Below, in pieces: positions 21,840 through 59,231 of a stretch of DNA of 64,000 bases. The DNA comes from Mobula birostris. Lineage: Eukaryota. The notes beneath the pieces are model-generated. The model ran no database searches and had not been told where the DNA came from. It saw only the letters and a program-made list of their open reading frames with translations. Position 1 is the stretch's first letter. Each line of letters starts with the position of its first letter. The DNA lies in assembly GCF_030028105.1 (NCBI RefSeq), contig NC_092389.1, forward strand, positions 19,641,180 through 19,705,179, written 5' to 3'. The position numbers and the translations under genes were made by a program.

Positions 21840-21921
21840 ATGGACCAAATTAAAGGGATGTTGACAACAAGCACGTTATTACAGTTGATAGTGTTCTTAC
21901 AGGAGCAGAGATGTCCAACAG
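21840..21921 (+). CDS. Candidate exon 1, signal peptide [27 protein letters not shown](G)
   Basis: aagATGG Kozak context, second in-frame ATG at 21858, hydrophobic core LLQLIVFL, and phase-1 donor AG|gttagt matching the phase-1 V-exon acceptor. It lies 16.4 kb upstream of the V exon. Confidence 0.6.
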
Positions 21922-24900: not shown

Positions 24901-25940
24901 GGCAAGAAACTCTATGACACAATCTTAGCGCCAAAGGGGCAGTAATGCGATTGCCATCTATTTACTGAAAACCTCAAGGATGTCTGAAAACTCAAGGGGA
25001 ACTCTTGAGATCAAAAGTCGCAAACTTGGGAATGTCAGAGGCAGTCTCAGGAACTCAGGAAGCTTCTGGGAGGCAGACCTTATGACAGCTGTAAGCCCAG
25101 CCCAGGACACTGCCATTAGACCAGTCTATAACGGGGCCATCCTAAAATGCGAAGGATCCCAGGGGGAATCTAAGCATTTCAGAATGGTCCCCTACCTGGA
25201 AGCGCAGGGGCTCTGAAACATAACACACCTTTCCTGGCTCAAGTGTTCACCCATCAAGAGACGTGGTATTAAGGGATGATTTAGCTTAGCAATTGGGACT
25301 CATCTGTCTGGACACCCGCAGATTTTAAAGAGTTACTTGCGGAGCCAGAGTCTATAAATTTTCCTTGTCGCCCCAGGCCAATAAAGAGGGCATATGTACC
25401 TCAGAGGTCATAAGATCAGGACCAGCACAGACCTCCCTCTACTAGACGGCCCTTTGAGTTTCCCAACAGTTCTGGACAAGTACGTCAAAGTGCCTTGTTT
25501 CTCTGTAATAAAGGCACAGTCTAGCTCCCTCAATCTCCTGTCCCACTGCACTGGGGAGAGACGGATCCTGCCCAGCTGTGTGATTGCAGGTAAGGTACGT
25601 GGATGAGTAGAAAATGTGGGTGAAGAACGGGGATAGAAGGAACCAAGTCCAGGGAACTCACTGCAGTGCTTCCTCTGATGCCTGGACATCCAATTGTCGT
25701 GTCGGATAGTTAAGTCAGTCAGTCCATCAAGGTCCTGTACCGGTTCATGGGCCGCCAGTTCGTCCTTGAGCTTTTCATTTAGATGTCTGTAGAACATGGC
25801 AATGGGGGCTTCTCCATTCAACCCATTCTCAAGTGCCTGTGTCCTGAACTGGATGGAGTACTTGGCCACACTGCAGGGAAGTCTTGAGCTGCCTGCTACG
25901 CCAGATGGGGTGATAGAAGTCCCTTCTCATGACGTGTGTA

Positions 25941-26021
<81 letters not shown>

Positions 26022-38000: not shown

Positions 38001-41000
38001 TCTGTTCCTGCTCCCTCCCACATCTGGTTCCAGCTGCCCATCATCCTGTCCCCATCTAGTTCCACCATTATCTGTCTCTATCCCACCCAACTCTGTACTG
38101 ATATAAACTGTTCCCCTTCAGTCTTGATGTAGGATCTCAACCTGACATAGTGAATGATACCTTTTGTCTCCAGAGATGTTGCTTAATCGCTGACTTTTTC
38201 AGCATTCTGTTTTCATTTTCCAAGTTAGCATTGTTGAAAGTGAACTTATATCAAACTATCAACTGAAGTCTGACTGAAAATGACAAGCTTTACTTCTTTC
38301 CCATCAGGGGTTCCAGTGGTCTTGGAGGTGAACCAGCCGCGTCTCGTCAGTGTCAGGAGAGGGGAGTCAGTCACGTTAAACTGCAGATTTACTCATAATG
38401 CAACCGAGGATAGCTGGGTCATCATTTTCTGGTACAGGACATCACCAAGGGCTGGAGATGCTCTTTACAAAGTGAATAATTCGCATTGTGTCTTTGATGC
38501 CTGTCTGCATGGATTGAAACACTGTAATGCATCACTGAAGGTTGAACATGTCTCCTTTGGTTACTCTGGTAATCGCTACTCCTGTATCCTGAGGATACCC
38601 AGTGTCTACCCACCATTAGAGGCAAGAGGCCAAGGAACACTGCTGCAGGTTTATGGTAAACTTTTTTTTTGTCATTCTACAAGTATAGTTTCTGCAATAT
38701 GAATCAGTATCAGAATCCGGTTTATTATCACTGACATATGTAGAGAAATTTGTTGTGCTGTGGCAGCAGTATAGTGCAAGACACAAAAATAATAAATATA
38801 AATAGGCATCTGTTAGTCTCATGAGACCATAGATTTGCACCTTGGAAGGTTTCCAGGGCACAGGCCTGGGCAAGGTTGTATGGAAGACCAACAGTTGTCC
38901 ATGCTGCAAGTCTCCCCTCTCCACGACACCGATGTTGTCCAAGGGAAGGGCACGAGGGCCGACACAGCTTGGCATCGGTGTCATTGCAGAGCAATGTGTG
39001 GTTAAGTGCCTTGCTCAAGGACACAACATGCTGCCTCAGCTGAGGCTCGAACTAGCGACCTTCAGATCACTAGACCAAAGCCTTAACCACTTGGCCATAC
39101 GCCAACACATAATATAATATAAGTTAAAGTAAAACTTAAAATAAATAACTAGTGCAATAGAGGAATTGTGAGGTGGGTTCATGGACTGTTCAGAAATCTG
39201 GTGGTTGAGGGAAAACAGCCGGTTTAAAATGTTGAGTGTGTGTTTTCAGGTTCCTGTATCTCTTTTCCAATGCTGATAATGAGAGGAGGGTGTGTTCTGG
39301 ATGGTAAGGGTCCTTTATGATGGATGCTGCCTTTCTGAGGCACCAGCTTTTGAAGATGCCCTCGATGGTGGGGAGGCTGGTGCCCATGATGGAGCTGGCT
39401 GAGTTTACAACCCTCTTTTCATCCTGTGCATTGGAGCATCCATACCAGATACAACTAATCAGAACACTCTTCATAGTACATCTGTAGAAATGTATGCATA
39501 TTAATCACAGTTAATATGACATAAGATAGGTTTGGCAGGATTAAAGAAAATCCAATAAGATTTTATGTACCTTAAGAGAAACAAAGAATAGAGACAGAAT
39601 AGGGCCCCTCAAAGATCAAAATGTGCAGTTTGTGTGAAGACCTAGGAGAAAGGCAGGAATGAAAATTTCTTCTCTATTTTTGCCATGGAAAGTATCATGA
39701 CTATATGGGAAAGAAGGGATGTGAATGGGGGTGTCTTGAGGATAGTCCATATTACTGCAGAGAAGATGCTGGAAGTCTTAAAAATTATATCCTAAAACAC
39801 TGTGGGATGCTAGAGAAGAAATTGTGAGGGTCTTTGCTGAAATATTTGCACAGTTTTTAGCCATGGGTGAGGTGCTGGAAGACTAGGGAGAAGCAAATAT
39901 TGTGCCTTTATTTAAGAATGACTGCAAAGAAAAACCAGGGAACTATAGACCAGTAATTCTGACATTGTTGGTAAGTTATTGGAGAGAATACTGAGGGATA
40001 AGATATGCATGCATATGGAAAGACATGGGTTGATTAGGGATAGTCAGCATGGCTCTGCGTATGGGAGATTATTTCTTATGAGTCTGAATCAGGTTTAATA
40101 TCACTGGCACATGTCATAAAACTGGTTAAGAAGGTGTTGGAGAAGATGGCGGCGTGACGCAGCTCACAGCGACCACTCCGGTGGTGACGTCTGTTATTTG
40201 TCAAGTAGGGTGCCATGCACAATCCTGATTTGATGGAGATGGACGTGAGAGCACGGAGGAACATCTGGTGAAACTTCTGAAATGCCTGCTTCGCTGCTGC
40301 TGCTACTGTGTGGTCCAGAATCACTGGAGGAGAAGACCCAAGTCCTTGGCTTTGCTTGTTGCTCGGTGGCCGGGGCGGGGCCAAAGCACTCGATAGAGGA
40401 TGGTGCTCGGAGAGGCTGTGTCGGAGGGGCTGGTCGGAGGCTCGAAGTTTTTGGACGGACTCAGAGTCCGCTGCGGTCGGGTGCTTCCAATAGTGCTGCA
40501 TCGGCAAGTTGGCGGCACTTGGAGGTTCATGGCAGGGAGAGTTTCTCCCTTCTGCCGCCTGCGTGGAATGATGAGTCTATCGGGACTTTGAGACTTTTTT
40601 TTTTACCGTGCCCATGGTCTGCTCTTTATCAAATTATGGTATTGCTTTGCACTGTTGTAACTATATGTTATAGTTATGTGGTTTTGTCAGTTTTAGTCTT
40701 GGTTTGTCCTGTGTTTTCTTGTGATATCATTCTGGAGGAACGTTGTATCATTTTTTAATGCATGCATTACTAAATGACAATAAACGAGGACTGAGTGTCC
40801 TCACAATCTAATCTATCTTAATGGCAGCAGTACAATGCAATACGTGATGATATAGAAAGAAAAATTAAATAAGTAAATCAATTACAGTATGTGCATATAT
40901 GTATATTAAATAGTTAAATTAAAGATAGTGCAAAAACAGAAGTAATTTTAAAAATTAGGTAGTGTTCATGGGTTCAATGTCCATTTAGGAATCAGATGGC

Positions 41001-44000
41001 AAAAGCTGTTCCTGAATTGATGAGTGTGTGCCTTCAGGCTTCTGTACCTCCTTCCCGACAGTAACAATGAAAAAAGGGCATGTCCTGGCTGATGGGAGTC
41101 CTTAATAATGATGGCATCTTTCCAAAGCACTGCTCCTGAAAATGTCTTGGATACTACAGAGGCTAGTACCCAAGATGGAGCTGACCAATTTTACAGATTT
41201 CTGTAGCTTTTTTTGATCCTGACAGTAGCCCTCCTCCCCCCACCACCTCCCATGTGATGCAGACAGTCAGAATGCTCTCCACGGTGCCTCTGTAGAAGTT
41301 TTCAAGTGTTGTAGGTGACAAACCAAATCTCCTCAAAGTCCTAATGAAGTATAACTGCTGTCTTGCCTTCTTTATAGCTGCATCAACATATACATACATA
41401 AGCATTAGATCCTTTTTTGCATTGATATGTTGGGACCATGTCAGATCCTCAGAGATCTTGACACCCAGGAACTTGAAATTGCTCAGTCTCTCCACTTCTG
41501 ATCCCTCAATAATGTTCCCTCGTCCTACCCTTTCAGAAGTCCATAATTAGTTCTTTCGTCTTATTGACATTGAGTGAAAGGTTGTTGCTGTGACACCACT
41601 CAACTAGCTGGTATATCTTGTTCCTGTACGCCCTCTCGTCTCCACCTGAGTCTCTGCCAACAATGGACGTATCATTTATAGATGGCATTTGAGCTATACT
41701 TAGCACACAGTCTTGAGTATAGAAAGAGCAGAGCAGTGGGCTAAGAACACATCCCTGAGGTGTGCCAATGTTGATCATCAGCAAGGAGTTTTCTTGACCA
41801 AGAATGTCAATGATGACAAGGCATTAGAAGTATGGACTTCAGTAAAGCCGTTGATAAGGTTCTACATGACAGACTGCTCTGGGATATTAGATCACATGGA
41901 ATCCAGGAAGAGCTGGCTAATTGGACACACAATCACACAATTGATTGTGGTGGTAGGAAGCCGAGGGTAATGATGGAAGGTTGTTTCTCACACTGGAGGC
42001 CCGTAACTAATCGGGGTCAGGGGTCAGTGGTCAGTGCTGGGCCTATTGTAGTTTGTCATCTATATTAATAATTTGGAAAAAAGCATGGTTAGTAAATTTT
42101 CAGATGGCATGAAAATAAGTGGAATCACTGACAGGGAAAAATGTTAATAGTAATTGCATGGGGCTCTTGATCAGCAAGATAAGTGGGCCAAGAAACAGCA
42201 AATAGAGTTTAATTCAGATAAATGTAAGATGTTGCATTTTGGAAAGTCAATTCATGGTAGGCCTCTCATAGTAAACGGTAGAACATCTGTGAGTGTTGTA
42301 GAACAGAGGGACCTTGATGTTCAAGTACATGGTGTCCTGAAAGCAGAGTCACAGGTATGGACGCTGGGAAGTTATGGTAAAGTTTACAAGACGCTAGTGG
42401 AGTATCGTGTTCAGTTTTGCTCATTCTGCTATAGGAAAGATGTTATTAAACTAGAAAGAGTGTAGAAAAGATTTACAATGATGTTGCCAGGACATGAGGG
42501 ACTGAGTCATAGGGAGAGATTGACAGGCTAGAACTTTTTCCCCTGGAAAAAAGGGGCTAGAGATGACCTTGTAGATGTGCATGTAATCTTGAGATAGGAA
42601 CTGATATTAATAATGCATTCAACACACATCAAAGTTGCTGGTGAACGCAGCAGGCCAGGCAGCATCTGTAGGAAGAGGTGCAGTCGACGTTTCAGGCCGA
42701 GACCCTTCGTCAGGACTAACTGAAGGAAGAGTGAGTAAGGGATTTGAAAGTTGGAGGGGGAGGGGGAGATCCAAAATGATAGGAGAAGACAGGAGGGAGA
42801 AGGATGGAGCCAAGAGCTGGACAGGTGATAGGCAAAAGGGATATGAGAGGATCATGGGACAGGAGGTCCGGGAAGAAAGACAAGGGAGGGGGGACCCAGA
42901 GGATGGGCAAGAGGTATATTCAGAGGGACAGAGGGAGAAAAAGGAGAGTGAGAGAAAGAATGTGTGCATAAAAATAAGTAACAGATGGGGTACAAGGGGG
43001 AGGTGGGGCCTAGCGGAAGTTAGAGAAGTCGATGTTCATGCCATCAAGTTGGAGGCTACCCAGACGGAATATAAGGTGTTGTTCCTCCAACCTGAGTGTG
43101 GCTTCATCTTTACAGTAGAGGAGGCCGTGGATAGACATGTCAGAATGGGAATGGGATGTGGAATTAAAATGTGTGGCCACTGGAAGATCCTGCTTTCTCT
43201 TTCTTTTGGTGAAAATAAAGCGGTGAGGGCCAGGGAACTTAAAATCATCCAAAAGTTTAAGCGCTTTGCTGAACATCTACGCTCTGTCCGCCAGAGAAAG
43301 CAGGATCTCCCAGTGGCCACACATTTTAATTCCACATCCCATTCCCATTCTGACATGTCTATCCACGGCCTCCTCTACTGTAAAGATGAAGCCACACTCA
43401 GGTTGGAGGAACAACACCTTATGTTCCGTCTGGGTAGCCTCCAACCTGATGGCATGAACATCGACTTCTCTAACTTCCGCTAGGCCCCACCTCCCCCTTG
43501 TACCCCATCTGTTACTTATTTTTATGCACACGTTCTTTCTCTCACTCTCCTTTTTCTCCCTCTGTCCCTCTGAATATACCTCTTGCCCATTCTCTGGGTC
43601 CCCCCCGCCCCCCGTCTTTCTTCCCGGACCTCCTGTCCCATGATCCTCTCATATCCCATTTTGCCAATCACCTGTACAGCTCTTGGCTCCATCCCTCCCC
43701 CTCCTGTCTTCTCCTATCAGTTTGGATCTCCCCCTCCCCCTCCAACTTTCAAATCCCTTACTCACTCTTCCTTCAGTTAGTCCTGACGAAGGGTCTTGGC
43801 CTGAAACGTCGACTGCACCTCTTCCTACAGTTGCTGCCTGGCCTGCTGCGTTCACCAGCAACTTTGATGTGTGTTGCTTGAATTTTCAGCATCTGCGGAA
43901 TTCCTGTTGTTTGCGTTAATAATGCATTCACTCTTTTTCCCAAGGTTGGGAAATCAAGACCAGAGAATATGGGTTTAAGGTGAGAGGATAAAGATTCAAT

Positions 44001-47000
44001 AGCCTGCTAAATTACTCTATGTCTCTATTTATGTACCAAATCCCATTCGGAAACACAAACACGCACTGATAACAAAAATATTCAATGGGAAATCTGGCTA
44101 ATTAAGTAAATTATGTTTCAATTCGGTACAATAAGAGGTATAACAATATTGGTGTTTATAGAACGTTTGCCAAATGGTGTCTTTGATATGTTGTTACATA
44201 GATTCAAGATTCAAAATACATTTATTATCAAAGTATGGATACAGAACTCCTTTTCATTGACTACAGCTCTGCCTTTAATACCATCATTCCAAATAAACTG
44301 ATTCCTAAGCTCCAGAACCTGGGCCTTAGCACTCAGATCTGCAGCTGAATATTCAACTTCCTCACAGACAGGACCCAGGCTGTAAAAATAGGGGACAAGC
44401 TCTCCTCTACAATCACTCTGAGCACCGGTGCCCCACAAGGCTGTGTATTCAGCCCCCTGCTGTACTCACTGTACACCCATGATTATGTAGCCAAGTTTCC
44501 ATTGAACTCAATATATAAGTTTGCTGATGACACAACAATTGTAGGCCGTATCTCGGGTAATGATGAGTTTGAGTACAGAGAGGAAATTAAGAACCTGGTG
44601 GCATGGTGCGAAGACAATAACCTATTCCTCAACGTCAGTAAGACGAAGGAATTGGTTGTTGACTTCAGAAGGAGTAGCGGACCGCACGACCCAATTTACC
44701 TCGGTGGTGCGCAGGTGGAACATGTCAAAAGCTTTAGGTTCCTCAGGGTCAATATCACAAATGACCTGACTTGGTCCAACCAAGCAGAGTTCACTGCCAA
44801 GAAGGCCCACCAGCGCCTTTACTTCTTGAGAAAGCTAAAGAAATTTGGCCTGTCCCCTAAAACTCTCACTAATTTTTATAGATGCACCGTAGAAAGCATT
44901 CTTCTAGGGTGCATCACAACCTGGTATGGAAGTTGTCCTGTCCAAGACTGAAAGAAGCTGCAGGAGATCGTGAACACGGCGCAGCACATCACACATTACC
45001 AAATTTCCCTCAGAATTAATAAAGTATATCTATCTATCTATCTATCTATCTATCTACCTATCTATCAAACCAATCAAACCAATCTTCCGTCCTTGGACTC
45101 ACTCCACACCGCACGCCGTCAGAGCAGTGCTGCCAGGATAATCAAAGACACGACCCACCCAGCCAACACACTTTTTGTCCCTCTTCCCTCCGGGAGAAGG
45201 CTCAGGAGCTTGAAGACTCGTACCGCCAGACTTGGGAACAGCTTCTTTCCAACTGTGATAAGCCTGCTGAACGGATCCTGACCCGGATCTGGGCCGTACC
45301 CTCCAAATATCCGGACCTGCATCTTGTTTTTTTGCACTACCTTACTTTCCATTTTTCTATTTTCTATTCATGATTTATAATTTAATTTTTTAATATTTAT
45401 TATTGATTTGTAATCCAGGAAGTGGGAAGCACAGAATCAAATATCGCTGTGATGATTGTACGTTCTAGTATCAATTGTTTGGTGACAATAAAGAATAAAG
45501 TATAAAGAACACAACTCTGAGATTCGTCCTCCCACAGGCAGCCACAAAACAAAGAAACAGAATGGAATACATTCAAGAAAACATCAAGCACCCAATGTGC
45601 AAAAAAGTTGCGCAAATGGCGAAAAGCGAGTGAACTCCACATAGAATATCAAAACAGTTCAGTTCAGCACTGCCCCGCTAGCTAATGCAGGCCACAGGGT
45701 CATTCTTCACCGAAGTGCCTCATTCTGCATTGATCACCCCGATCAAACTGCTCAAAGACGACACAAAAAAAGAGCAACCTGAACCCAGGAACACGTGCAA
45801 CATGAACCCCAAAATCCCCCAAGATGGGTCTACAGCCTCGTCGCTAAATCTGGGCAACATAGACCCCAGGACTTCTGCAGTTCCTCTGACAGCAGCCTGG
45901 TCAAGTGCAGGCACATGGTGCTGAACTCTTGCCCATCCTCTGCTCCTGTCCTCATTGCCTTTAACATTGCTTGACGCCTCAATCAGACAAAAGCAATGGA
46001 GTTAATCATGGGGCTTACATCCCAACTCCAGGCTACCAGGGTCACAAAAAAAACAAAAAAGATAGAAACACTCAGCAGGTCAGAGTTAATGTTTCTCTCT
46101 CCACAGATTCTCCTGATCTGCTGAGTGTTTCCAACATTTTCTGTTTCAATTCAGAATCCCAGCATCTGAATGTTTATTAGTTTTCATTTAATGTAAAGAA
46201 TCACAAATCAGGTATGAAAACCATAACTGAAATTAATTTGGTGTTGCACTCATTGTTATTAACTGTTCCATTTCTGCCAAGTACAATTCTTCCACTGTCA
46301 GCAGAGTTGAGGTGAGTGGGCACGAGGCAGAGTCGAGGCAAGTGGAGGGGAGGCGGAGCTGAGGAAGAGTCGAGGCAAGTAGAGGCAAGGCAGAGTTGAG
46401 GTGGAGCCCGGGCCTGTCCTCAAGAGCATGGAAAGACACAACAGGTCCAGCTTCACCGCCATTGAGTGACTCGCTGATGGGGTAAACCTGCCGTGCTTGA
46501 TATTCTTAATATCCAGCAGTGCCTTGCAGTCATAAAACAGACATAAAGAACAAACAGTTACACCTTTGTTTTGGACTCGGAGAGGCCGCTGTGGCCGAGT
46601 ATGCTGCCATCTTACCAGCTTCAGTTCAAAACCCAGGAGTGTGAGCTTCTTCAACTATCATTTCCTAATGCTTTTACTGCCCAGGATACAGGATGCACCC
46701 TGGGATTCTTACACGGTGCACAATATGCATTCCACTCATTTAAGGTGCCCTAATGCCTCAAAAGACTATGTTAATTCAACTAATAAAAAGATGATACTTA
46801 AAATCCTACTGGATTTCTCACAGTTTTGGTAATCTGCAAGCAACATTTTTTATTTTCCAGCCATTAGTTTAAATCAACTGCTTGCTTTCACTCACTGTTT
46901 GCGTTGGTCCTTTTAAACTCTTCTTAAGCATTCTGCTGGCATCGCAAAACAGGGATATAAATCAAAAGGAAGCACTGAATATAAATAGATAATCCAGATA

Positions 47001-50000
47001 CTTGCACATCCATCACAAGAACAGAATTCCATGACACAATTGAAGGTGACGCATATTAACTGAATCTGGATTTAAGGAAATCAAATCCACTGGCAATACT
47101 GAAAATAATATTGGGTCATGCAAAATTTGACAAATTCTTCCAAATTAGCAACTATAATACTCATGGGAAAGTGTTCTATGTAAGTCTGCTTGCACAGGTC
47201 CTGTCATCAGCTAAGATTATATTTATGATTCACACTTATTGAAATAGAAATGTGATATAAACTAAGTTTTATTTAGCACTAAAGAACAATATATTTTTAT
47301 CTTGCATTGTTTATTACAGTTCCAGAATCTCCACCAGAAATTTTAATTACTCATGAAGAATTAATAGCAGAGAAGCCGTCCGCTTTGTACTGCCATGCTT
47401 GGGGATTTTATCCTCAGAACATCTCAATGAAATGGCTGCATATCCACAATGCTCAGGCTTCAGAAGCAGATGTTAAAGTTACAACAAGACTCTCCCCTCT
47501 CAAGAGCCTCAATGGTACATTTAATGCCACCAGTCAAATGAATTTTACTCCCACCTCGCAAGACCACAAGACAATCCGTACTTGTCAGGTTCTTCATACA
47601 ACAAGCAAACAATGGATCATAAAAAATATAACACTTAACGTCAATTGTAAGTATGTTCAATTTATGGTCTTAATCATAGTATGAAATGATATAACATACA
47701 GTATTTCTAACTGAGGTAAGTTGGGTGCTAAATATATTATTTCACTTTTTAAATTAGTAGGTAATGTCAATTTAGCAAACTGTCCTTTCACCTTGAATTC
47801 TCAAAAAAAATCAATAACCCTCAATGACTAACTGCTCCTACCTACACAATGTCCATATCCCTCCATCTTCTTCACATTCATGTGCATATCTAACCGTCTC
47901 TTAAAAGCATCTAATGTATTTGTCTCTACCATCATGCCAGGCAGTGCATTCCAGGCATCCATTACTCTCCTCACATTCCCTTTGAACCTCATTTCTCTCA
48001 CCTTCAATGCATGCCCCCTGGTATTGGAAGTTTTAACCCTGGGAAAAAGATACTCCCTATGCACTCTATCTATGCTTCTCATAATCTTATAAAGCTCTAT
48101 CAGATCTCTCCTCAGCCTTCACCACTCTAAAGAAAATACCCCAAGTTTGTCCAGCCTCTTATAATAGCACATGTCCTCTAAACCAGGCAGCATCCTGGTA
48201 AACTTCTTCTGCACCCTCTCCAAAACCTCAACATCCTCCTATAATGGGGCAAACTGAACAGTATGCAATTCTCCAGATGTGTCCTAACCCGAGTTCTATA
48301 ATGTTGCAATATAACCCTTGATTTTTGAACTCATTGCTTCGACTCATAAAAGCAAGTATTCCATCAGCCTTCTTAATCACCCTATCTATCAAACTGGGTA
48401 GCCACTTTCATGGAGATATGAACTTGGATCCCAAAATCTCTCTGCTCCGCAACACGGTTAAGGATCTTGCCCATAACAGTGTGCTGTCTTCTTGTATTTG
48501 CCCTACCAAGGTGCAATGCTTGCATTACATTGTTATTCTTTTTTTCTCAATAAAAGTTTCTTTGCCTAGATGAGTAAGGAACTTTCACAAAACAGTTTTG
48601 TGTCATAAAAAGTAAAAGTAGGAAACACAATGTAGGAACAGGCATGATGATATTTAAGATAGACTTAACCATAGACCATAGGACCATAAGATAAAGGAGC
48701 AGAATTAGGCCATTTGGCCCATCAAGTTTGCTCCACCATTTCATCATGGTTGATCCATTTTTCAAGAATCTATCAACCCCTGCCTTAAATATACATGAAG
48801 ACTTAGCTTCCACAGTTGCCTGTGGCAAAGAATTCCACAGGTTCACCACCCTCTGGCTAAAGAAATTCTTCCTCATCTCCATTCTGAAAGGACACCCCTC
48901 TATTCTTCTGAGGCTGTATCCTCTGGTCTTAGACTCTCCCACGATAGGAAACATCCTCTCCACATCCACTCTATCAAGGCCTTTCACCATTCAATAGGCT
49001 TCAATGAGGTCCCCCCTCATTCTTCTGAAATCCAGTCAATACAGGCCCAAAGCCATCAAACACTCTTCATGTGACAAGCTATTCAATCCTGGAATCATTC
49101 TTGTGAACCTCCTTTGAACCTTTGCCAAGTTTCAGTACATCCTTTCTAAGAAAAGAGGCCCAAAACTGCTCACAATACTCCAAGTGAGGCCTCAACCGTG
49201 CTTTATAAAGCCTACAGCATTAAAGATATTTTTCTTTAAGAAGTATAAAGCCCAGATTGCTTCAGGGCTACTTGAAAATAAAGAGAGGGGGAATGAGATG
49301 GACCAAATCAATCCAATGGTCCCCTTCTACATTATAAGATATGATCTGGTCATGGAGTTAAATGCCACAGTTTTAAAATAAGTAGTTAAGCTTGTTAAGA
49401 CAGGGAGTGTTTTGACAATGAAATAAAATAGAAGAACTTTTAAAAATGGTAATTAATATGTGGATGGACTAACTTGCAGCTAATAACCAGAAACCGGGAC
49501 CACAATGTATTTCTCTTTCAAAGTGGCGGCACTGGTTCAACTGGCCAAATGAACTCAAGTTGCAAGATTTTATAATATAATTCATTATTATAAATCAAAA
49601 TATTGCTTCTGAATCTATAAAATCTACTTATAATAACAGGTTAAAAATGAGACAAAAACACAATGGGGTTATAGTGGACTATTTCTGAAGTTTAAGTGTA
49701 AATAAAATGAAAAGAATTTTGGTAGGGATATTGAGCAAGTGTATTAGATGTGTTTCTGAAAGGAAATCTTGTAAAACTACCATATAGAACCTGATTCATT
49801 GAACTATTTCCCATTTAAATATATTGGTAAATCTTTATATATACTGTATATATAAAAATTTACTAATTTGAAGTGTCTCTAGATAATTGAATATATTAAC
49901 ATGTATGACTTTGTATATAACTTATCATACAAGGTGATCAAGAGAGATATCACTACAGTAAGAGAGGAAGAAAACACAGATATTAAATCAAACTGCTGTT

Positions 50001-53000
50001 CTCTGCTCTCAAGGGAAAAGATTCTTGGTGGGTTTTTTTTGGAGTACATATTAGTAAATTGAATTCCATTTTATAAATCTCTACTTTCATAATTGCAATT
50101 ATGAAATACAATTGCCCAGAGCAATCTTTTCTTTTCAATTTTGTCCCTTGGATAAACATCTAAGTTAAAAATGTATCAGAAGTTGCTGCTTCAATTTCCT
50201 GTCAGTTACATTCTGTCTCTAACTCGCCATATGCAATTCTGTAAGGTTTTGTTGAAACGGCCTTTGTAACTCACATTTTTTCCCTTTTCCATTGTTCTGG
50301 TTGAGATGGTCCACAACCAGTCATGTATTACAGAAATTCTATTTTGGATCACTTCCAGCCACTACTTGAGGACATTATCTACATTGAACCCCAATCATAT
50401 CTTGAACTAAAATGCACCGCGGACAGTAATCCAGTATCCACAGTCATTTGGATGAAATCAGGGGGGCATACTGAAAGGATACAATTAGCCAATGGAGTAG
50501 GCAACTCAGTTTTACTAAACGAGAATACTGATGATTTCTACAGTGGAAAGTACATTTGCAGAGCATTCAATGCATTTGGTTCAAAAGAATATCCTCTGGC
50601 AATATATGTGATATCCGCTTGGAAAAGTAAGTACCATTATACCACCCAAAGTCTATTTTTTTCTGCTTTATTAATTCATAGAGCATAAGCACATGGAATC
50701 TGGATCCGGCACCAAGCTTGATCCCAGCAGCTCATAAATGGGAGAGGTTTGATAACATATAAAACCCATGCTCAAATGCGATAGAGATTGCAAAGGATCA
50801 TGGGAAAGTATTGTAGGAGCAGGAAGAGCAGAGCAATGACTGGAGGAGGTAGCCAGGATAGAAAACATAGAACATAGAATAGTACAGCACAGTACAGGCC
50901 CTTCGGCCCACAATGTTGTTCCGACCCTCAAACACTGCCTCCCATATAACCTCCCACCTTAAATTCCTCCATATACCCATCTAGTAGTCTCTTAAATTTC
51001 ACTAGTGTATCTGCCTCCACCACTGACTCAGGCAGTGCATTCCACGCACCAACCACTCTCTGAGTAAAAAACCTTCCTCTAATATCTCCCTTGAACTTCC
51101 CACCCCTTACCTTAAAGCCATGTCCTCTTGTATTGAGCAGTGGTGCCCTGGGGAAGAGGCACTGGCTGTCCACTCTATCTATTCCTCTTAATATCTTGTA
51201 CACCTCTATCATGTCTCCTCTCATCCTCCTTCTCTCCAAAGAGTAAAGCCCTAGCTCCCTTAATCGCTGATCATAATCCATACTCTCTAAACCAGGCAGC
51301 ATCCTGGTAAATCTCCTCTGTACCCTTTCCAATGCTTCCACATCCTTCCTATAGTGAGGCGACCAGAACTGGACACAATACTCCAAGTGCGGCCGAACCA
51401 GAGTTTTATGGAGCTGCATCATTACATCGCGACTCTTAAACACTATCCCTCGGCTTATGAAAGCTAACACCCCATAAGCTTTCTTATCTACCCTATCCAC
51501 CTGTGAGGTAACTTTCAGGGATCTGTGGACATGTACCCCCAGATCCCTCTGCTCCTCCACACTACCAAATATCCTGCTATTTGCTTTGTACTCTGCCTTG
51601 GAGTTTGTCCTTCCAAAGTGTACCACCTCACACTTCTCCGGGTTGAACTCCATCTGCCACTTCTCAGCCCACTTCTGCATTCTATCAATGTCTCTCTGCA
51701 ATCTTCGACAATCCCCTACACTATCTACAACACCACCAACCTTTGTGCCGTCTGCAAACTTGCCAACCCACCCTTCTACCCCCACATCCAGGTCATTAAT
51801 AAAAATCACGAAAAGTAGAGGTCCCAGAACCGATCCTTGTGGGACACCACTAGTCACAACCCTCCAATCCAAATGTACGCCCTCCACCACGACCCTCTGC
51901 CTTCTGCAGGCAAGCCAATTCTGAATCTACCTGGCCAAACTTCCCTGGATCCCATGCCTTCTGACTTTCTGAATAAGCCTACCGTGTGGAACCTTGTCAA
52001 ATGCCTTACTAAAATCCATATAGATCACATCCACTGCACTGCCCTTAACTATATGCCTGGTCACCTCCTCAAAGAACTCTATCAGGCTTGTTAGACACGA
52101 TCTGCCGTTCACAAAGCCATGCTGACTGTCCCTGATCAGACCATGATTCTCTAAATGCCCAGAGATCCTATCTCTAAGAATCTTTTCCAACAGCTTTCCT
52201 ACCACAGACGTAAGGCTCACTGGTCTATAATTACCCGGAATATCCCTACTACCTTTTTTGAACAAGGGGACAACATTCACCTCCCTCCAGTCCTCCGGTA
52301 CCATTCCCATAGAAGGAGCAGTTTGTTGGACTAGGGGTGAGACTGATTATCTAATCGCTGAGCAGATTATCTGGGAGGTGCAGGCAAATAACCGAGAAGG
52401 ATTAGCACGGTTGTGTTGGGCAGATAATCAGCATGTTTGGGTAGATGAATAGGATGATGAGGTCAGACATATGTTTGGGTATGGGGCTAATAATGAGGCA
52501 GGAAAGATATGTACAAGTCAGATGTTTGCTGGAGATAGCGAAGTAGATTGTGGTGTGGCTTGGGAATTTAGCACGGGGCTAATCATTATAAAGAACAGTT
52601 AAATATGACACAAACCTTGCAGAAGTGGACTGTTGGACTCTGCAGTGACGTCCTATGGATGGACGAGCCTTAAAACTAACCCCAAAGGAGGTCTCCGATT
52701 AAGATATGCTTCAGTGTTTTTACGGGCCTCGAGAGCGTGGAAGAAACTCCCATGAGTAGTGTCAAATAATCACAGGATGTTTGACATTACTACAGCACCA
52801 GGAACCAGAAATGGCAGAAATTTCTGGAACAAAACTGGCCCAGGAACCTCTGTCCCAAAATAAAAAAAGACAAACCTCCACATCAAATGATTGTACTACA
52901 TGAGACAAGAGTAAGTAATATAAAGCAGCTTAAAAATATATCATTTCTTCAAATTACATAATTAAATTAGCAATTGGTAAAATATAATTTTATCTATATT

Positions 53001-56000
53001 ACTATTTAGAATAGTCTAGGGAGCCGAAGTACTAATATCACATTTCTAAGACATTGTAATTTGTTGAAATATGGGCTGGTAGTTTCCTACCTTGTACAAT
53101 AGCTTGGAAAATCCACAACAGCTTAAATGAGAAAATGCAAAAGAATTTACAATTCATAATATTACCAAGATGCTGAGTCAGTATATGAGTTACTATACCA
53201 GGAAGGCGATTTATCTAATATTTGTCAGCATTCTTAGATATTGAAGTAGATAATGATCTGTATGAGCAGTATGCACTGTACTTCAGTAATAATAAACCAA
53301 ATCCAATTCAAATTCCAATTCCAAACATTTTTTTCTTCCTGCTACACAGGATATTTCACTCACCGATTTGTAACGGTGCCAATCTTTGTGATGACTGTCG
53401 TTTTGTTACTGCTCTGGAGCAATAAAGGTAAATTAGATAGATTTAGATTAGATTAGATTATGAGGACACACAGTCCTCTTTTATTGTCATTTAGTAATGC
53501 ATGCATTAAGAAATGATACAATGTTTTTCCAGAATGATATCACAGAAACACATGACAAACCAAGACTGAAAAACTGACAAAAAACACATAATTATAACAT
53601 ATAGTTACAACAGTGCAAAGCAATACTGTAATTTGATAAGAACAGACCATGGGCACGGTAAAAGTCTCAAAGTCTCTCGAAAGTCCCATCATCTCACGCA
53701 GACGGTAAACCTCCAGTGCTGCAAACTTGCCGGTGCGGCATACTAGAAGCATCCGACCACAGTCCGACTCTGAGTCCATCCGAAAACTCCAAGCCTCCGA
53801 CCAGCTCTCCGACACCAAGCACCGAGCACCATCTCTGCCGAGCGCTTCGAACTTGGCCCCGGCAACAGGCAATACGCAAAGCCGAGGATTTGGGGCCTTC
53901 CCCTCCGGAGAATCTCGATCGCACAGTAGCAGCAGCAGCGAAGCGGGCATTTCAGAAGTTTCTCCAGATGTTCCTCCACGCTTCTCATAGCTGTCTCCGT
54001 CAAATCAGGATTGTGCACGGCCCCCTAGTTAACACGAATCGATATCAATTTGGAACGGCCGCGCACGCTGCGTCACACCGCCATCTTATCCTCCCTCTTC
54101 TACTTACTGGAATTCAGAAGAATGAGAGGGATCTCATTGAAAGCTATTGAATGTTGAAAGGCATTGATAGAGTGGATGCGGGGAGGATATTTCCAATGGT
54201 GGGGGAGTCAAAGAGACCACAGCCTCAGAATACAGGTACAGGCATTTAGAACAAAGATGGGGAGGAATTCCTTTCGCTGGAGAGTGGTGAATCTATGGAA
54301 TTCATTGCCACAGGCAGCTGCGGAGGCCAAGTCATTGGGTATATTTAAGGCAGAGGTTGATATATTCTTGACTGATCAGGGCATGAAGGAATACGGGGAG
54401 AAGGCAGGAGATTGGGGCTGAGAGGGAAATGAATCAGCCATGGTGAAATGGCGGAGCAGGCTTGATGGGCCAAATGGCCTAATTCTGCTCCTTTACATTA
54501 TGGTCTTATGGTCTTAAATGATGAAAGAACAAATATGAAGTGGAAGTTTCAATAGGCATTAATGCTCATCACCTGATATGAGTATGTATTTATGTAGGTG
54601 AATTTGGATGGATAAAATAACTCAAGGCACCAAACCTACATGATAATGTATTTCTTCAATGGTCGATTATAGGAAGTGATGGTCAACACCATTATGACAC
54701 TTGTGTAGAATAGTTGCAGGACGCAGTAACTGAAAGGTCAGGGACGTCAAATTGGTGGGTGAGCATTCTATTCACTATTGAATTGTTGAGTCAAATCAAA
54801 TGATAACTTGAAAAGTTGATAGTAAAGTTAAACATTAATTTCAAAAATGCTGTACACCATAGGTTTATTTTTAAATGCAGTAGGAAAAGTTGATTGAGAA
54901 AACTAAAGTATATCATCAAGTCATCTTGGAGGGGTATAGGGGTTTCAAGAGTGGATAGAAATTGACAAGCAGTAACTTGGAAAGGCATGCTAGCATATAA
55001 ATGTTACATTATGGTTAATATCACATTTCAGTAACCTCTCCAGGAAACAATAGATAATATTAATGTATATAATAAATATATGCCATCTGGAATATGTAGA
55101 TCCTGTGACAAAGACAAATGCCTAAAAAATATCTCAGGTGAAATTAAGCCTAATTTCTCACTCTCATGTAAAATTTTCTCCTTCGTTATTGAACCACTCT
55201 GATGGATAAAGCGCTCTGTAAAATGAATTCTTATGTTAAAAAATCAGTAATAAAATAGTAGCAGTTGGCTGGATTGCAGAGACCAAGCAATCTGGGGCGG
55301 TGTTGTTACAATGTAAAGAAAATGCATCAAGCATTAGCATCCATGAGTGTTCCATGAGATGAAAATCTGTATTTTTATGAAGTTACTGCCAGATTCCACA
55401 TAATAAGAGTTGCATTACAGAATTGTCTTAATAGCGTACAATTCTTTTTTATTTCACAGATCGATACTTCTTGTGCAATAGGAGGTAAGTCCCAAAATAG
55501 CCCATTACCCTTTGCATACACATGGAACAGAAACAATTATCTCTGATATTATGCATTAGGTAATAAGCACATGAGGAACAGTTCACAGCCTTTAGTGACT
55601 GCAGTGTTGAGCTGAGGAATTTCTAAACTCAGACTCTGAATGACTAATGTACTTTAACGTTCGACAGCAGGGCTTGGATAAACCACAGGAGAGGGAAGCC
55701 TAGTGACACCAGCCGGCGGGCATGGCATCAGTTCAGACTGGAATTAAGGAAGGTTTAGATTAAAGATTTGTCAGACTATGGAGTAAAATCCACAGAGGCA
55801 GGTGCAGTTAACAGGTCAAACATTTTGTAATCTTTATAATGCATAGAAGATGGAATTCAGATTGCATGCCAAAGTTGCAAACAGTCACATCCAAGCTGCT
55901 CATAAAGAACATCAGGATTTGAAACCGGAAATGGCCGTTCACCACTTGTGCTTCCTCATCTCTTCGATAAGATTATGACTGAACTTCTACCTCAAATCCA

Positions 56001-58927
56001 AATCCTGCACTAACCCTATATACCTTTATCCTCCTATTATCCAAAATACTATCCATCTCTGTCTTGAATATACTGAGATTCCAAAGAATCTGTCTTTGGA
56101 ATGAAGAAATACCTTCTCATCACAGAAAGGCCAAGTCTCCATTCTGCGAATGAGATCCTTGGTTCTGAATACTCAGGCTATGGGAAATATTAACTTCACA
56201 TTCTGATATGAATTTTGAATGAAATCACAATGATATAATATAATAAGCACAGTTCCAATCTGCTTCACCTATCTTCAAATGACAATTTCACCATTCCAGG
56301 AATCAACTGCACTCTCTTCATCACAAGTATATCCGTTCTAAAATTTGAAAACTAATATTCCAAATGTATCTGTTTTTCACTCAAATTTTGTTGCAATAAA
56401 TGGCAACTTACAGGCAGGTCCTAAGGGGCACCACGATAGAGTAGCAGTCAGCTTGACGGTAATACAGCTCTGGATTTCTGAGGTTTGGAGTTCAATTCTG
56501 GTGCCTTTCTGTAAGGAGTCTCTGTATCCTTCCCCATGGAATGCTTGGGTTTTCATCCAGGTGCACTGATTTCCACCCACCGTCCAAAGACGTACCAGGT
56601 AGGTTAATTGGTCATTATAAATTGTCCCCTGATTAGGTTAGGGTTAATTGGATTTGTTAGGGTTGCTGGGGTGGTGTGGTTCGAAGAGCTGGAAGGGTCT
56701 ACTCCATGCTGTATCACTAAATAAATTAAACAAAATAAATAAATGCTGTACCTACATTTAACTTTCTGTGACGCATGTATGTATGAGCCCAGCCAGTCTC
56801 TCTGCGACAGTCGAGGGTAAGCTGAGGATAAAATGGCCAGTGACACGTGCCAGGTAAGCAGAATGATAAAATGGAAGCAGTAAAGCTCATCAGCTTTGTG
56901 TCGCTCCTGTATCTCGGAAGGTTGACTGCAGGTCTTCCCATTGTGTTGCAGGTGAAAAGGAGGAGTGTCCTAAATAGATTCCAAGATGCCTCTGGAAAGA
57001 ATTATTCCAGAGATTAGACTCTAGTCTCTAAAGAAAGGTTACAACAAGGATAAAGGCCATTAAATTTACTTGAGTCTGTGTCAATTGTGTGGAAGAACAA
57101 TCCAGTTAGCTGCAATCACTCGCTCTCTTCAAACTATCCTGCAATTTTTTTTTTTATTTTCATGGAGTTACCCAGTTCCCTTTTCAACACCATGAGATCT
57201 CACTATAGTATCTTCACCACCACCGCTCACTTCTGTCCCAGCCATGTGTTCCAGTTCCCAACCATTTTCTGCTTAAAAGTATTTTTCACTCATGTCACTT
57301 TTGGAACTTGAGCCAGCCATCTTCATTATGTGTCCTCTAGTTCTTGGCTTTTCTCCTCCCAGGACATTTTCTCTCCATCTACTTTTGTCTATCTTTAATG
57401 GCTTCTAATCTGCGTTCCTCTCCCACCCACTATTCTACGCTGTGATCTCCACTTGTCAAAGAAAAAGAACCTCAGCTTCTCCAGTCTCATCACATAAAGT
57501 CACTCGTTTATAGAAACACTTTGCTCTAATCTCTTACTCTCGCCTGAAAGACTTCATATATTTCCTTCTGAATGGTGTCTGGTAGTGGACAGAAGGCTAC
57601 ACATGTGACTAAGTTTTATCAAGGTTCACCATGACTTTTTTCAATGGTCGATGTGCATACTACCAAAGCTCTCCTATCATACACATCTTTAGGAATTTTT
57701 AATCACTTTTCCTTGCTCTTTACTAAAATGTAGCACATCATTTTTGACTGCATTAAAGTTCAGTAGCCATACTGAGCACACATTCCACCAGCTCACCTAT
57801 ACCTCCTTGAGGTCTATGACTATCATTGCCACAATTCTCAACATCTCCAAATTTTGTATCAATTACTGATTTGGAAACTGTGCCCTGTGGACCCAAGTCC
57901 AAGGCATTCATTTTTACATTAAAAAAAGTGCAGTGGTCCATAGTACTGACTCTCATGGACACATCCACTGATCTGAGAAATAATCTAGTGAAAACAATTT
58001 TGGAGGGCACAGTAAAAAACACAGATATAAGAAACAATTATCTTGTTCCAAACTAGCAACATTCATATCATGCTGGAGGAACTCAATGGGTCAGGCAACA
58101 TCTATGGAAGGAAATGGAGAGTTAATATTTTGGGTCAAACCCCTTCATTCAGGCTCTAAACCCAAAATGTTGAGTCTCTAATTCCCTCCATAAATTCTGC
58201 TTGATCTGCTACATTCCCCTAACACCCTGCGTGTTGCTCCAGATTCCAACATTGGCAGTTTCTTACATCATCATCATCCATATCATTCTCATCAGATGAC
58301 AGGCCATTCAGCTTTTAGTAACCTGACTATTTGGTAAGTAAATCACAGAACAATAATGGTTACAAAAACAAACTATCCAAGATATTGGAAAACTGAAATG
58401 TAAATATAAAAAAACTGGGAATATTAGAGGTCAGCAACAGCTGTTGAAACAGAAACATTTAATTTACATTGATGACCTACCACTAAAACCTGATCAAATA
58501 GTTAACCAACTTTTTCAGAGAGCATAATCTTACAATATCTTGTTTTCAGATATTGTCACACATTTGTCACCTTTATATTTGAAACCTCATTGAACTCTGA
58601 GCAGAATTGGCTGCCAATCATTGGTGAATAACCCAAAGTTTATTCAGTAAACAGTAAATGAATTGGGCAGAATAAAGATATCAGTCATTGTGTGTTTGAG
58701 GAAGAAGCTGAGATGATAGATTAAATTATATGCTTGCTCTGGACTTCCTCAGTGGTTCCTAAATGAGCATTACAGAAGAATTATGGAAATCATTCTTCAT
58801 TGATTTGTTGATCTTCTTTCTCATTAGGAATACAAAACAACTCAAGAACCAACGTCAATGGATTAAAGACGACACCTATGAAGATGTTGATAATCAAGAG
58901 GACAGGATAATGACCTCTGAATTCTGA
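21840..58927 (+). CDS. Spliced gene model (7 coding exons): Ig-superfamily type I membrane receptor, leader-VJ-C1-C2/I-TM-Tyr tail, about 426 aa
   Basis: Exons 21840-21921, 38308-38655, 47320-47646, 50306-50626, 53350-53427, 55460-55484, 58828-58927 join in frame (junction phases 1,1,1,1,1,2) with GT-AG sites. They total 1281 nt and end in TGA at 58925-58927 with no internal stop. The leader exon is the least certain part. Confidence 0.85.
23260..24510 (+). mobile_element. CR1-type LINE nested in the chromovirus
   Basis: ORFs with [33 protein letters not shown] and FADDTK. Confidence 0.85.
25941..26012. repeat. Compound microsatellite (TC)10(AC)n
   Basis: Read directly from the sequence. 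Confidence 0.95.
28775..30790 (-). mobile_element. CR1-type LINE(s), degenerate
   Basis: ORFs 28845-29153, 29213-29455, 29564-29824 and 29951-30247 carry CR1 RT and C-terminal motifs. Confidence 0.85.
31300..32400 (-). mobile_element. CR1-type LINE fragment
   Basis: ORF 31501-31803 [30 protein letters not shown]. Confidence 0.8.
32500..36480 (+). mobile_element. CR1-type LINE 3' half, split by the HERO insertion
   Basis: [12 protein letters not shown] before the insertion; [17 protein letters not shown] after 35884. Confidence 0.75.
32925..35770 (-). mobile_element. HERO-clade non-LTR retrotransposon (RT + CCHC + restriction-like endonuclease), 5'-truncated
   Basis: ORFs 34997-35698, 33821-34990 and 33203-33817: [23 protein letters not shown](N)[33 protein letters not shown]. 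Confidence 0.85.
36500..37810 (+). mobile_element. Penelope-like element 3' part (GIY-YIG + terminal repeat)
   Basis: ORF 36608-37429 [30 protein letters not shown]; terminal repeat with a hammerhead-like motif. Confidence 0.88.
37695..37730 (+). ncRNA. Degenerate hammerhead motif at the 3' end of a Penelope element
   Basis: AGTC-CTGACGA-AGGGTTCCGGCCC-GAAAC-ATT-GACT; GTC is replaced by ATT, which breaks stem III. Confidence 0.5.
38308..38655 (+). CDS. Exon: V-set Ig domain with J-like G strand (NKp30/NCR3-like VJ domain)
   Basis: Acceptor ttctttcccatcag and donor G|gtaaac, phase 1-1. Motifs VNQP..G.SVTLNC, FWYR, ASLKV, YSC and RGQGTLLQV. Confidence 0.93.
38806..39108 (-). mobile_element. 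tRNA-derived CORE-like SINE
   Basis: Reverse complement: A box TGGCCAAGTGG, B box GTTCGAGCC, core tgtccttgagcaaggcacttaacc. Confidence 0.75.
39180..40075. mobile_element. Adjacent Rex1-type (-) and CR1 (+) fragments
   Basis: ORF 39190-39474 [15 protein letters not shown]; NYRPV and DSQHG motifs at 39940-40050. Confidence 0.6.
40143..40818 (+). mobile_element. GC-rich non-autonomous retroposon starting AAGATGGCGG and ending AATAAA plus an (ATCTA)n tail
   Basis: Second full copy on the - strand at 53434-54087. Confidence 0.75.
40850..41810 (-). mobile_element. Rex1/Babar-type LINE, degenerate
   Basis: [17 protein letters not shown] and [13 protein letters not shown] motifs. Confidence 0.75.
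42682..42717 (-). ncRNA. Minimal type I hammerhead ribozyme motif (inverted copy)
   Basis: Reverse complement reads AGTC-CTGACGA-AGGgtctcggCCT-GAAAC-GTC-GACT. Confidence 0.75.
43779..43814 (+). ncRNA. Minimal type I hammerhead ribozyme motif in a Penelope terminal repeat
   Basis: AGTC-CTGACGA-AGGgtcttggCCT-GAAAC-GTC-GACT: stem I AGTC/GACT, CUGANGA core, stem II AGG/CCT, GAAA, palindromic ACGU stem III, GUC cleavage triplet. Confidence 0.75.
44248..45510 (+). mobile_element. Rex1/Babar-type LINE, 5'-truncated
   Basis: ORF 44502-44951 [26 protein letters not shown]; flanking AGAAC at 44243-44247 and 45506-45510. Confidence 0.88.
47320..47646 (+). CDS. Exon: C1-set Ig domain
   Basis: Acceptor tttattacag and donor T|gtaagt, phase 1-1. 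Motifs [25 protein letters not shown] and TCQVLH. Confidence 0.93.
47825..49235 (-). mobile_element. Two CR1-type LINE 3' ends
   Basis: ORFs 47828-48082 and 48547-48990 with [14 protein letters not shown]-type C-termini. Confidence 0.8.
50306..50626 (+). CDS. Exon: C2/I-set Ig domain (Siglec/CD22/CEACAM-like)
   Basis: Motifs [14 protein letters not shown] and [12 protein letters not shown]; donor A|gtaagt. The acceptor ttgag at 50305 gives the junction NVN-Y-GP; an alternative in-frame cag ends at 50320. Confidence 0.88.
50862..52310 (-). mobile_element. CR1-type LINE, well preserved 3' 1.4 kb
   Basis: 320-aa ORF 50928-51890 [23 protein letters not shown]; ORF 51927-52310 [20 protein letters not shown]. 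Confidence 0.92.
53350..53427 (+). CDS. Exon: transmembrane segment (R)[25 protein letters not shown]
   Basis: Pyrimidine tract plus cacag acceptor, donor G|gtaaat, phase 1-1, 17-residue hydrophobic run. Confidence 0.85.
53434..54087 (-). mobile_element. Second copy of the AAGATGGCGG-headed retroposon, inserted beside the TM-exon donor
   Basis: ccgccatctt at 54078-54087; (tagat)n tail at 53434-53460. Confidence 0.75.
54110..54520 (+). mobile_element. CR1-type LINE 3' end
   Basis: ORF 54164-54421 [19 protein letters not shown]. Confidence 0.8.
55460..55484 (+). CDS. 25-nt cytoplasmic micro-exon (D)RYFLCNR(R)
   Basis: Acceptor ttttttatttcacag and donor AG|gtaagt. It converts phase 1 to phase 2, exactly as the last exon requires. 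Confidence 0.8.
56425..56740 (+). mobile_element. tRNA-derived V-SINE-like element
   Basis: Homologous to 20517-20805; B-box-like GTTCAATTC. Confidence 0.6.
58828..58927 (+). CDS. Terminal coding exon: [32 protein letters not shown]-stop
   Basis: Acceptor tcttctttctcattag, phase 2, open to TGA at 58925-58927, contains an acidic Tyr motif. Confidence 0.8.
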
Positions 58928-59225: not shown

Positions 59226-59231
59226 AATAAA
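59226..59231 (+). terminator. Candidate polyadenylation signal AATAAA
   Basis: AATAAA about 300 nt downstream of the stop codon. Confidence 0.35.

Follow-up and report, generated by a model that had tools for sequence, protein, structure and literature searches.

A predicted SIRP-related receptor gene with V(J), C1 and I-type domains in Mobula birostris and its relatives in cartilaginous and early-branching ray-finned fishes

Genes in which an unsplit V domain with its J motif (VJ) is followed by a C1-set domain are rare, and they provide raw material for theories on the origins of antibodies and T-cell receptors (TCRs). The discussion of VJ-C1 origins has so far been based on NKp30, SIRP and PRARP and, in sharks, on UrIg and UrIg2. 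Within the SIRP family, the tails of some members carry immunoreceptor tyrosine-based inhibitory motifs (ITIMs), while other members are short-tailed and have a basic residue in the segment that crosses the membrane. Teleost NITRs, of V(J) plus I composition, have a non-rearranging V domain with a J motif, occur in inhibitory and charged-span forms, and are not known to have a C1 domain. UrIg and UrIg2 consist of a VJ domain followed by C1-type domains only (3 and 9-11, respectively); both form disulfide-linked dimers, and UrIg is secreted (PMC12227049). The PRARP family is cited in PMC10751288. Here, we have analyzed a window of 64,000 nucleotides from Mobula birostris (contig NC_092389.1, positions 19,641,180 to 19,705,179 of the forward strand; no runs of N), in which positions 21840-58927 of the window appear to hold a membrane-bound receptor gene with a VJ-C1 module.

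On the basis of current results, it is probable that this region contains an intact, non-rearranging gene of seven exons, which belongs to an old SIRP-related receptor family of the immunoglobulin superfamily (IgSF) and encodes a type I membrane glycoprotein. The seven exons all lie on the plus strand, their borders are canonical AG/GT throughout, and the phases at their ends (1,1,1,1,1,2) are mutually compatible. Once spliced, they form a frame of 1281 nt that encodes 426 residues and ends in its only stop codon. This agrees with a preliminary description of the locus, which had reported seven exons that splice into one open frame within 37 kb of transposon debris; reverse-transcriptase fragments were indeed found in the introns, whose sizes from 5' to 3' are 16.4, 8.7, 2.7, 2.7, 2.0 and 3.3 kb. 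Exons 2, 3 and 4, each of which has phase 1 at both ends, are 348, 327 and 321 nt long and match exactly the lengths of 116, 109 and 107 residues given there for the three ectodomain units. The same description had counted seven N-glycosylation sequons in the V and C1 domains. Their location was correct, whereas the number was not: eight N-X-S/T sites are present, three in V, five in C1 and none in the third domain (D3).

Exon 1 (21840-21921) contains the start codon and the leader, 27 codons plus 1 nt, with the hydrophobic core LLQLIVFL and the donor GTTAGT; an additional in-frame ATG is located at 21858. Its core was the most hydrophobic among the candidates extending from an ATG to a phase-1 donor that were listed for 15-38.3 kb, it supplies the Gly that the family has at the V junction, and it is similar to the leaders of the relatives, which are of the MQLLLKLLFILQTAVQG type. 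Exons 5 and 7 were located by orthologue mapping, as hydrophobicity scans alone were ambiguous for the exon of the membrane span. The sixth exon is a micro-exon of 25 nt (55460-55484), which was found by scoring all AG..GT and AG..GC intervals against the peptide DRCFLCNRR of the stingray Hemitrygon akajei. It scored 44 versus 13 or less for all other candidate intervals, and it has a strong polypyrimidine acceptor (TTTTTTATTTCACAG) and the donor GTAAGT. A candidate polyadenylation signal, identified by its match to the consensus, lies on the plus strand at 59226-59231, ∼300 nt past the stop, and is the single AATAAA/ATTAAA within 1.5 kb past that codon.

The three domains of the ectodomain are encoded by one exon each. 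Exon 2 (38308-38655) comprises a V-type domain, from the A strand through GQGTLLQVY, and thus holds the J-like motif GQGTLLQV in the same exon. Since no RSS-like (recombination signal sequence-like) heptamer of the CACAGTG type could be observed within 38201-38760, in or near this exon, V and J are joined in the germline, and the gene is non-rearranging, as had been suggested. The best PDB matches of the family profile of this exon were TCR V-alpha, VL and VNAR chains, with which it aligned from end to end. The cysteines of the B and F strands, an extra cysteine pair and the G-x-G-T motif are invariant in V across the family. A fifth V cysteine (38502-38504; FDAC, or PDVC in Hemitrygon) was observed in both rays and is absent in the sharks; as judged from the sequence, it leaves one cysteine unpaired and could allow an interchain bond.

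Exon 3 (47320-47646; CQVLH) encodes a C1-set domain (Pfam C1-set, 7e-12, 45.9 bits versus a cut-off of 21) and carries the five sequons of C1 mentioned above. Its matches in PDB include MR1 alpha3, beta2-microglobulin, D3 of SIRP-alpha and SIRP-gamma, B7-H6, Ig constant domains and shark UrIg2. Exon 4 (50306-50626; GKYICRAFN) encodes a membrane-proximal I-set/C2 domain, with 33.2 bits for Ig_3 (cut-off 30), 26.3 bits for I-set (cut-off 23.7) and no C1-set match in Pfam. In PDB it matches DSCAM, contactins, neurofascin, nectin-3 D3, MAG and CEA. Together with the alignment of V to antigen-receptor V domains, these assignments agree with the proposed ectodomain of VJ, C1 and C2/I type. The acceptor AG of exon 4 at 50304-50305 keeps the phase, and the codon split there gives NVN-Y-GP at the C1/D3 junction, that is, the NVxYGP signature that had been noticed before. 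Another acceptor for this exon, at 50358, was rejected because it breaks the phase.

Comparison of the family profile with an alignment of SIRPs (hhalign) yielded a probability of 99.4% and an E-value of 9e-22 over 226 columns with 26% identity. The aligned part covers the leader, V and C1 and ends at the border between the second domain (D2) and D3, and the GxGT motif is placed opposite GPGT of SIRP. SIRPs were also the best named matches in the search with the family profile (1e-21 to 1e-43), and SIRP V domains appeared among the matches of the V exon at about E 4e-4. These alignments indicate a clear homology of the leader, V and C1 with D1-D2 of SIRP. The protein thus has a SIRP-homologous V(J)-C1 module atop an I-set/C2 stalk domain; a membrane span that is strongly conserved comes next, and beyond it lie a juxtamembrane cysteine and an acidic tail of short length.

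Orthologues were then found in both sharks and rays, where a search had been recommended, namely in Hemitrygon, Hemiscyllium and Pristiophorus. When the V exon was used as the query of an exhaustive HMMER search, six relatives with 43-50% identity and the V domain at the N-terminus were obtained, followed by a large gap and then by generic V domains. The protein of the sawshark Pristiophorus japonicus (408 aa) is a full-length orthologue that is 50-59% identical and has the same layout of V, C1, I, span and tail. The locus of Hemitrygon akajei (L001) is collinear with the window at ∼90% nucleotide identity, including introns and transposons. It holds the exons of V (intact at L001:7446-7792), C1, D3, span and tail in order, with 70-84% amino-acid identity and an intact frame; the C1 exon is ∼84-85% identical to that of the window. 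The micro-exon of this species is covered solely by the NCBI model (P0048), in which span, micro-exon and tail are as in the window gene. In the carpet shark Hemiscyllium ocellatum (L007), V, C1, D3, span and tail exons were likewise found in order with the frame intact. Because the exons recur in order in stingray and carpet shark, and the sawshark has the protein at full length, a chance origin of the gene can be ruled out.

Members of the family were identified in skates, electric rays and stingrays, and in horn, carpet, whale, zebra, cat and saw sharks. Outside the elasmobranchs, paddlefish, sturgeon, bowfin and gar have a member as well, only 3-3.6 kb long and with an unchanged exon plan. 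Thus, the earlier suggestion of a receptor of cartilaginous fishes was too narrow, and the family is older and more widespread than that first reading held, while what we say of its function is inferred. Its description as uncharacterised was partly right. No paper on the family could be found in the literature on SIRP in elasmobranchs and teleosts, PRARP and VJ-C1 receptors; on the other hand, the V-C1 half is homologous to SIRP, and the proteins are already present in NCBI and UniProt. Their automatic names (Siglec-10 to -14, sialoadhesin-like, MAG-like, syg-2-like, HMCN2 and SIRP-alpha-like) are misleading and include no descriptive family name, and several of the gene models are truncated or lack the V exon.

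Some of these models deserve a separate comment. The NCBI model of Hemitrygon begins in a reverse-transcriptase fragment of the V-C1 intron that is 92% identical to the copy in the window, adds a second odd exon and omits the intact V exon (window 41832-41948 and 46154-46288; L001 10001 onward). Its 5' end is either a transposon-driven alternative start or an error of the gene model. Read-through of the D3 donor in the window gene (50627-50688) would add ∼20 residues before a stop, and the models of Hemiscyllium (P0049) and Scyliorhinus canicula (P0080) finish in an equivalent read-through (SKC...), which hints at a possible secreted isoform. In the Scyliorhinus model, the end of V is fused straight to D3 and the C1 exon is skipped, representing an isoform or an annotation gap. 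Short contigs from public read sets (L005 and L006; SRR089296 and SRR090301) contain a clade A C1 exon (see below) of the GFYP type from another species; these Logan contigs are uninformative on splicing because they are genomic rather than transcripts.

A maximum-likelihood tree of 19 rows was rooted on four SIRPs; the transposon-derived N-terminus was trimmed from the stingray row, and P0005 (V only), P0080 and the Logan fragments were left out. Three clades were well supported: elasmobranch clade A, which holds the window gene (100/99), elasmobranch clade B (99/99) and an actinopterygian clade (97/99). The tree does not settle the branching order among them. As shark and ray sequences occur together in clade A and again in clade B, the two are old paralogues. 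Members of clade A have the classic C1 signature (GFYP..IS..W, C.V.H), the span motif, the juxtamembrane cysteine and a short acidic tail, whereas in clade B the C1 is degenerate, the span is of another sequence and the tails are long, with three ITIM-like motifs (IYAxV, VSYADI and SEYSVV). The window gene is the ray orthologue in the short-tailed clade A, and the ITIM-bearing clade B is its sister. It should be noted that in Rhinoraja longicauda (L004, 1-319 and 10001-44363) two clade B genes are arranged in tandem (P0001 and P0055); one encodes a short-tailed protein of 380 aa, the other a protein of 491 aa with a full ITIM tail.

The membrane span is encoded by exon 5 (53350-53427), with a conserved Arg at 53364-53366. 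The motif R-x-V-T/S-x-P-I/L-F-V is common to the window gene, sawshark, catshark and the actinopterygian members, and the carpet shark keeps the Arg and has FLVFLV in place of P-I/L-F-V. In the AlphaFold2 (AF2) model of the orthologue, the span is predicted as a helix with low confidence. The micro-exon adds the juxtamembrane segment DRYFLCNR(R) with its cysteine, and exon 7 (58828-58927) encodes the acidic tail, which is 79% identical to that of Hemitrygon over the aligned stretch and contains YEDV (58877-58888), the terminal T-S-E-F (58913-58924) and the stop (58925-58927). Neither an ITIM nor an immunoreceptor tyrosine-based activation motif (ITAM) was observed in the tail of the window gene. 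The tail had been described as bearing a tyrosine motif. YEDV is indeed present in the two rays, but it is absent in the three sharks, and what is conserved instead is a C-terminal S/T-x-F/L, kept in five species (the tails of clade A end in TSEF, ITEF, TSEL or TSKL). YEDV is therefore not a feature of the family, and it could equally be a sorting signal of the YxxΦ type, judging from its sequence.

With regard to genomic context, a gene with RIIa and IQ motifs is located directly downstream of the family member in gar (L002 16305-23615) and paddlefish (L003 17563-23068). We take this neighbour to be SPA17-like on the basis of its N-terminal sequence, with which an Atlas lead (score 0.88) agrees; it is not an MHC (major histocompatibility complex) gene. 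Upstream of the paddlefish gene (L003 1-2587) there is an IgSF gene of 524 aa with C1-set, C2-set_2 and I-set domains, the last exon of which (open reading frame 2060-2341) contains VPYADILI, an ITIM like VSYADIVI of clade B. Hence, ITIM-bearing and short-tailed genes may be neighbours in ray-finned fish, too. An ITIM-like match on the minus strand beside the gar gene was spurious. For clade A in stingray and carpet shark, and for clade B in skate and whale shark, flanks of 10 kb were too short to reveal any neighbours. Within the window, only transposon open reading frames and no cellular gene were seen in 1-21 kb, including fragments of integrase zinc-binding and Tc1/Sleeping-Beauty-type transposase sequences 5' of the gene (12321-12809 and 14095-14604). 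A tblastn search with the exons of the gene itself and with 11 relatives revealed no paralogous Ig exons elsewhere in the window; weak minus-strand matches at 11-12 kb and 20 kb were considered noise.

Some of these features are shared with nectin/CADM-type adhesion molecules, and it may be asked whether the protein functions at cell-cell junctions, with its tail as a PDZ ligand, rather than in immunity. Like nectins and CADMs, it has a three-domain ectodomain with an I-set D3, a single span and a short tail, and the C-terminal S/T-x-F/L is compatible with a class I PDZ ligand. Among Swiss-Prot models, nectin-1 and CADM3/4 were the top fold matches of the sawshark orthologue; in PDB, the ectodomains of nectin-1 and Necl-4 ranked high, and D3 of nectin-3 is among the matches of exon 4. 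The SPA17-like neighbour might point in the same direction through the human map, in which SPA17 is located at 11q24, on a chromosome arm that also carries NECTIN1 and CADM1. However, D2 is a true C1-set domain (GFYP...W...C.V.H), the C1-set score of which contrasts with 18.4 bits for C2-set_2 (cut-off 21), and no nectin or CADM chain occurs among the best 60 PDB matches of the C1 exon or of the C1 profile. Furthermore, V carries the J-like GxGT and can be aligned with D1 of SIRP, no more than 16-19% of residues are identical in nectins and CADMs, the family profile reaches CADM3 at 1e-9 only, far behind the SIRPs, and the sister clade carries ITIMs. We therefore regard an adhesion molecule of this type as unlikely.

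The evolutionary rate of the SIRP-related gene was estimated from the comparison between the window and Hemitrygon. The V exon differs at 13.3% of bases versus 9.5% in the introns (P=0.013), and its nonsynonymous rate is twice that of C1 and D3 taken together (P=0.002), with dN/dS values of 1.8 for V and 0.53 for C1+D3. Such rates fit a ligand-binding tip that may be under diversifying pressure, as in many immune receptors, and they are not a proof of it.

Several observations weigh against the interpretation of the locus as an intact SIRP-related receptor gene. First, the gene model is a prediction from genomic sequence, and its leader exon, 16.4 kb 5' of the V exon, is the sole part that is not supported by orthologues. 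The searches for relatives by word index were not exhaustive. Second, exon 2 reaches 21.6 bits for V-set, below the Pfam cut-off of 26. In the AF2 model of this exon (pLDDT 86.5), the best E-values were obtained with antibody and TCR V domains, VpreB, IGSF6, NKp30 and CD8-beta, whereas superposition was best on the I-set domain of LRIG (TM 0.67-0.71 versus 0.55-0.6 for antigen-receptor V domains); because the two measures favour different folds, the model leaves the choice between V-set and I-set unsettled. Third, a Foldseek search with the AF2 model of the whole sawshark orthologue (pLDDT 78.5) did not distinguish SIRP, nectin, CADM, MAG and CD22 (E 1e-17 to 1e-19, up to 20% identity), and the conserved Arg falls within a low-confidence region of this model. 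Fourth, the actinopterygian members lack the C-terminal S/T-x-F/L. Finally, the excess of V dN/dS over 1 is not significant (bootstrap 0.88-5.2, Fisher P=0.26), and C1 and D3 are no better conserved between the two rays than the introns. The last point, the lower conservation of the V exon, the bloated introns and the omission of the V exon from the NCBI model of Hemitrygon would all suit a decaying or non-functional copy, in which the open frame over 37 kb of transposon debris is a relic. On the other hand, frame and splice sites are kept in all seven exons, even in the micro-exon of 25 nt; the frame is intact from V to tail in Hemitrygon, and the exons of V, C1, D3, span and tail are present in Hemiscyllium as well. 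In addition, the dN/dS of C1+D3 is 0.53, and the structural cysteines, tryptophan and J motif are invariant throughout the family. A relic thus appears highly improbable, even more so than an adhesion molecule.

As to how the SIRP-related receptor may work, we propose that it would be expressed at the cell surface, where the fast-evolving V domain at its tip would bind a protein ligand. The ITIM tails of sister clade B suggest a paired-receptor system. Since the clade A protein has no ITIM or ITAM of its own, it could be the non-inhibitory partner of the ITIM-bearing clade B paralogues, in a pairing modelled on SIRP-beta and SIRP-gamma relative to SIRP-alpha. Its signal would then be transmitted, or the protein anchored, via other partners. 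One candidate is an adaptor with an acidic membrane span, which the conserved Arg might hold; this Arg lies towards the outer end of the receptor's own span, a position like that in FcR-gamma-coupled receptors. The other is a PDZ scaffold on the C-terminal S/T-x-F/L, and both partners might also act together. For such pairing as a whole, we would put the chance at somewhat less than even; within it, adaptor coupling and PDZ anchoring seem about equally likely.

The family adds to this field a membrane-bound VJ-C1 receptor that is common to sharks, rays and early-branching ray-finned fishes. The sequence comparisons suggest a much greater age for the SIRP-type V-C1 module than for the SIRPs of tetrapods, which were the sole SIRPs among the search matches. 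A further step, to regard this family as a pre-tetrapod sister group of the SIRPs or even as their ancestor, in a VJ-C1 lineage predating the split between cartilaginous and bony fishes, is no more than tentative and, in our opinion, rather doubtful. If so, UrIg and UrIg2 would be joined by a third VJ-C1 lineage that is still living and on which models of antigen-receptor origin can be tested, and paired inhibitory and non-inhibitory V-C1 receptors would date to the base of jawed vertebrates. In this case, the lineage may have divided early into adjacent ITIM-tailed and short-tailed genes, as the neighbour in paddlefish might recall. The family could also represent an ancient pair of inhibitory and non-inhibitory receptors.

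Among the known systems, UrIg and UrIg2 of sharks and rays resemble this family in that a non-rearranging VJ, encoded by a single exon, precedes a C1-set domain. The profile of C1 strongly matches the structure of UrIg2 (9dmx), and the V profile has TCR V-alpha, VL and VNAR as its best matches, as would be expected of a member of the UrIg/UrIg2 lineage or of another direct relative of rearranging antigen receptors. In contrast with UrIg and UrIg2, in which VJ is followed by C1-type domains only (PMC12227049), the present family combines a single C1 with an I-set stalk domain and spans the membrane, and it is found in ray-finned fishes, too. Moreover, UrIg2 is absent from the best 60 matches of the V profile, and the best named full-length relatives are SIRPs, which leaves such a membership barely credible. 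Still less can be said for a sialic-acid-binding lectin of the Siglec type, as the database names of the relatives (Siglec-10, -11, -12, -13 and -14, sialoadhesin-like and MAG-like) would have it: Ig1-3 of MAG and CD22 are among the top PDB fold matches, and D3 with its NV.YGP-type junction and the ITIM tails of clade B are Siglec-like, but V keeps ordinary disulfide cysteines of the B and F strands (LNC ... YSC) and has no family-conserved Arg in the F strand, whereas an essential Arg and disulfides in an unusual arrangement are the defining traits of the Siglec V-set, and D2 is a true C1-set domain, a type that, to our knowledge, Siglecs lack.

NITRs, with which the family was compared by description only, resemble it in their non-rearranging V with a J motif. 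RAGE (V-C1-C2), which is not known to have a J motif, has its domain types in this order, too, and likewise ends in a short acidic tail; this likeness is one of layout, and the RAGE ectodomain (4ybh) was found among the fold matches at rank 47 (E 1e-12, 15% identity). SIRPs are like this family in having a V domain with a J-like GxGT followed by C1 in a type I membrane protein, and in both families some members have an ITIM tail and others a short tail together with a basic residue in the span. They differ in that SIRP is V-C1-C1, whereas the D3 of the ray protein is I-set/C2 and does not align to SIRP D3; the SPA17-like neighbourhood in gar and paddlefish is also presumably unlike that of human SIRPs. 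Thus, the window protein departs in one defining feature from every named family considered: as far as its sequence tells, its V-C1 half is SIRP-like, and its D3 belongs to the type seen in adhesion molecules or Siglecs.

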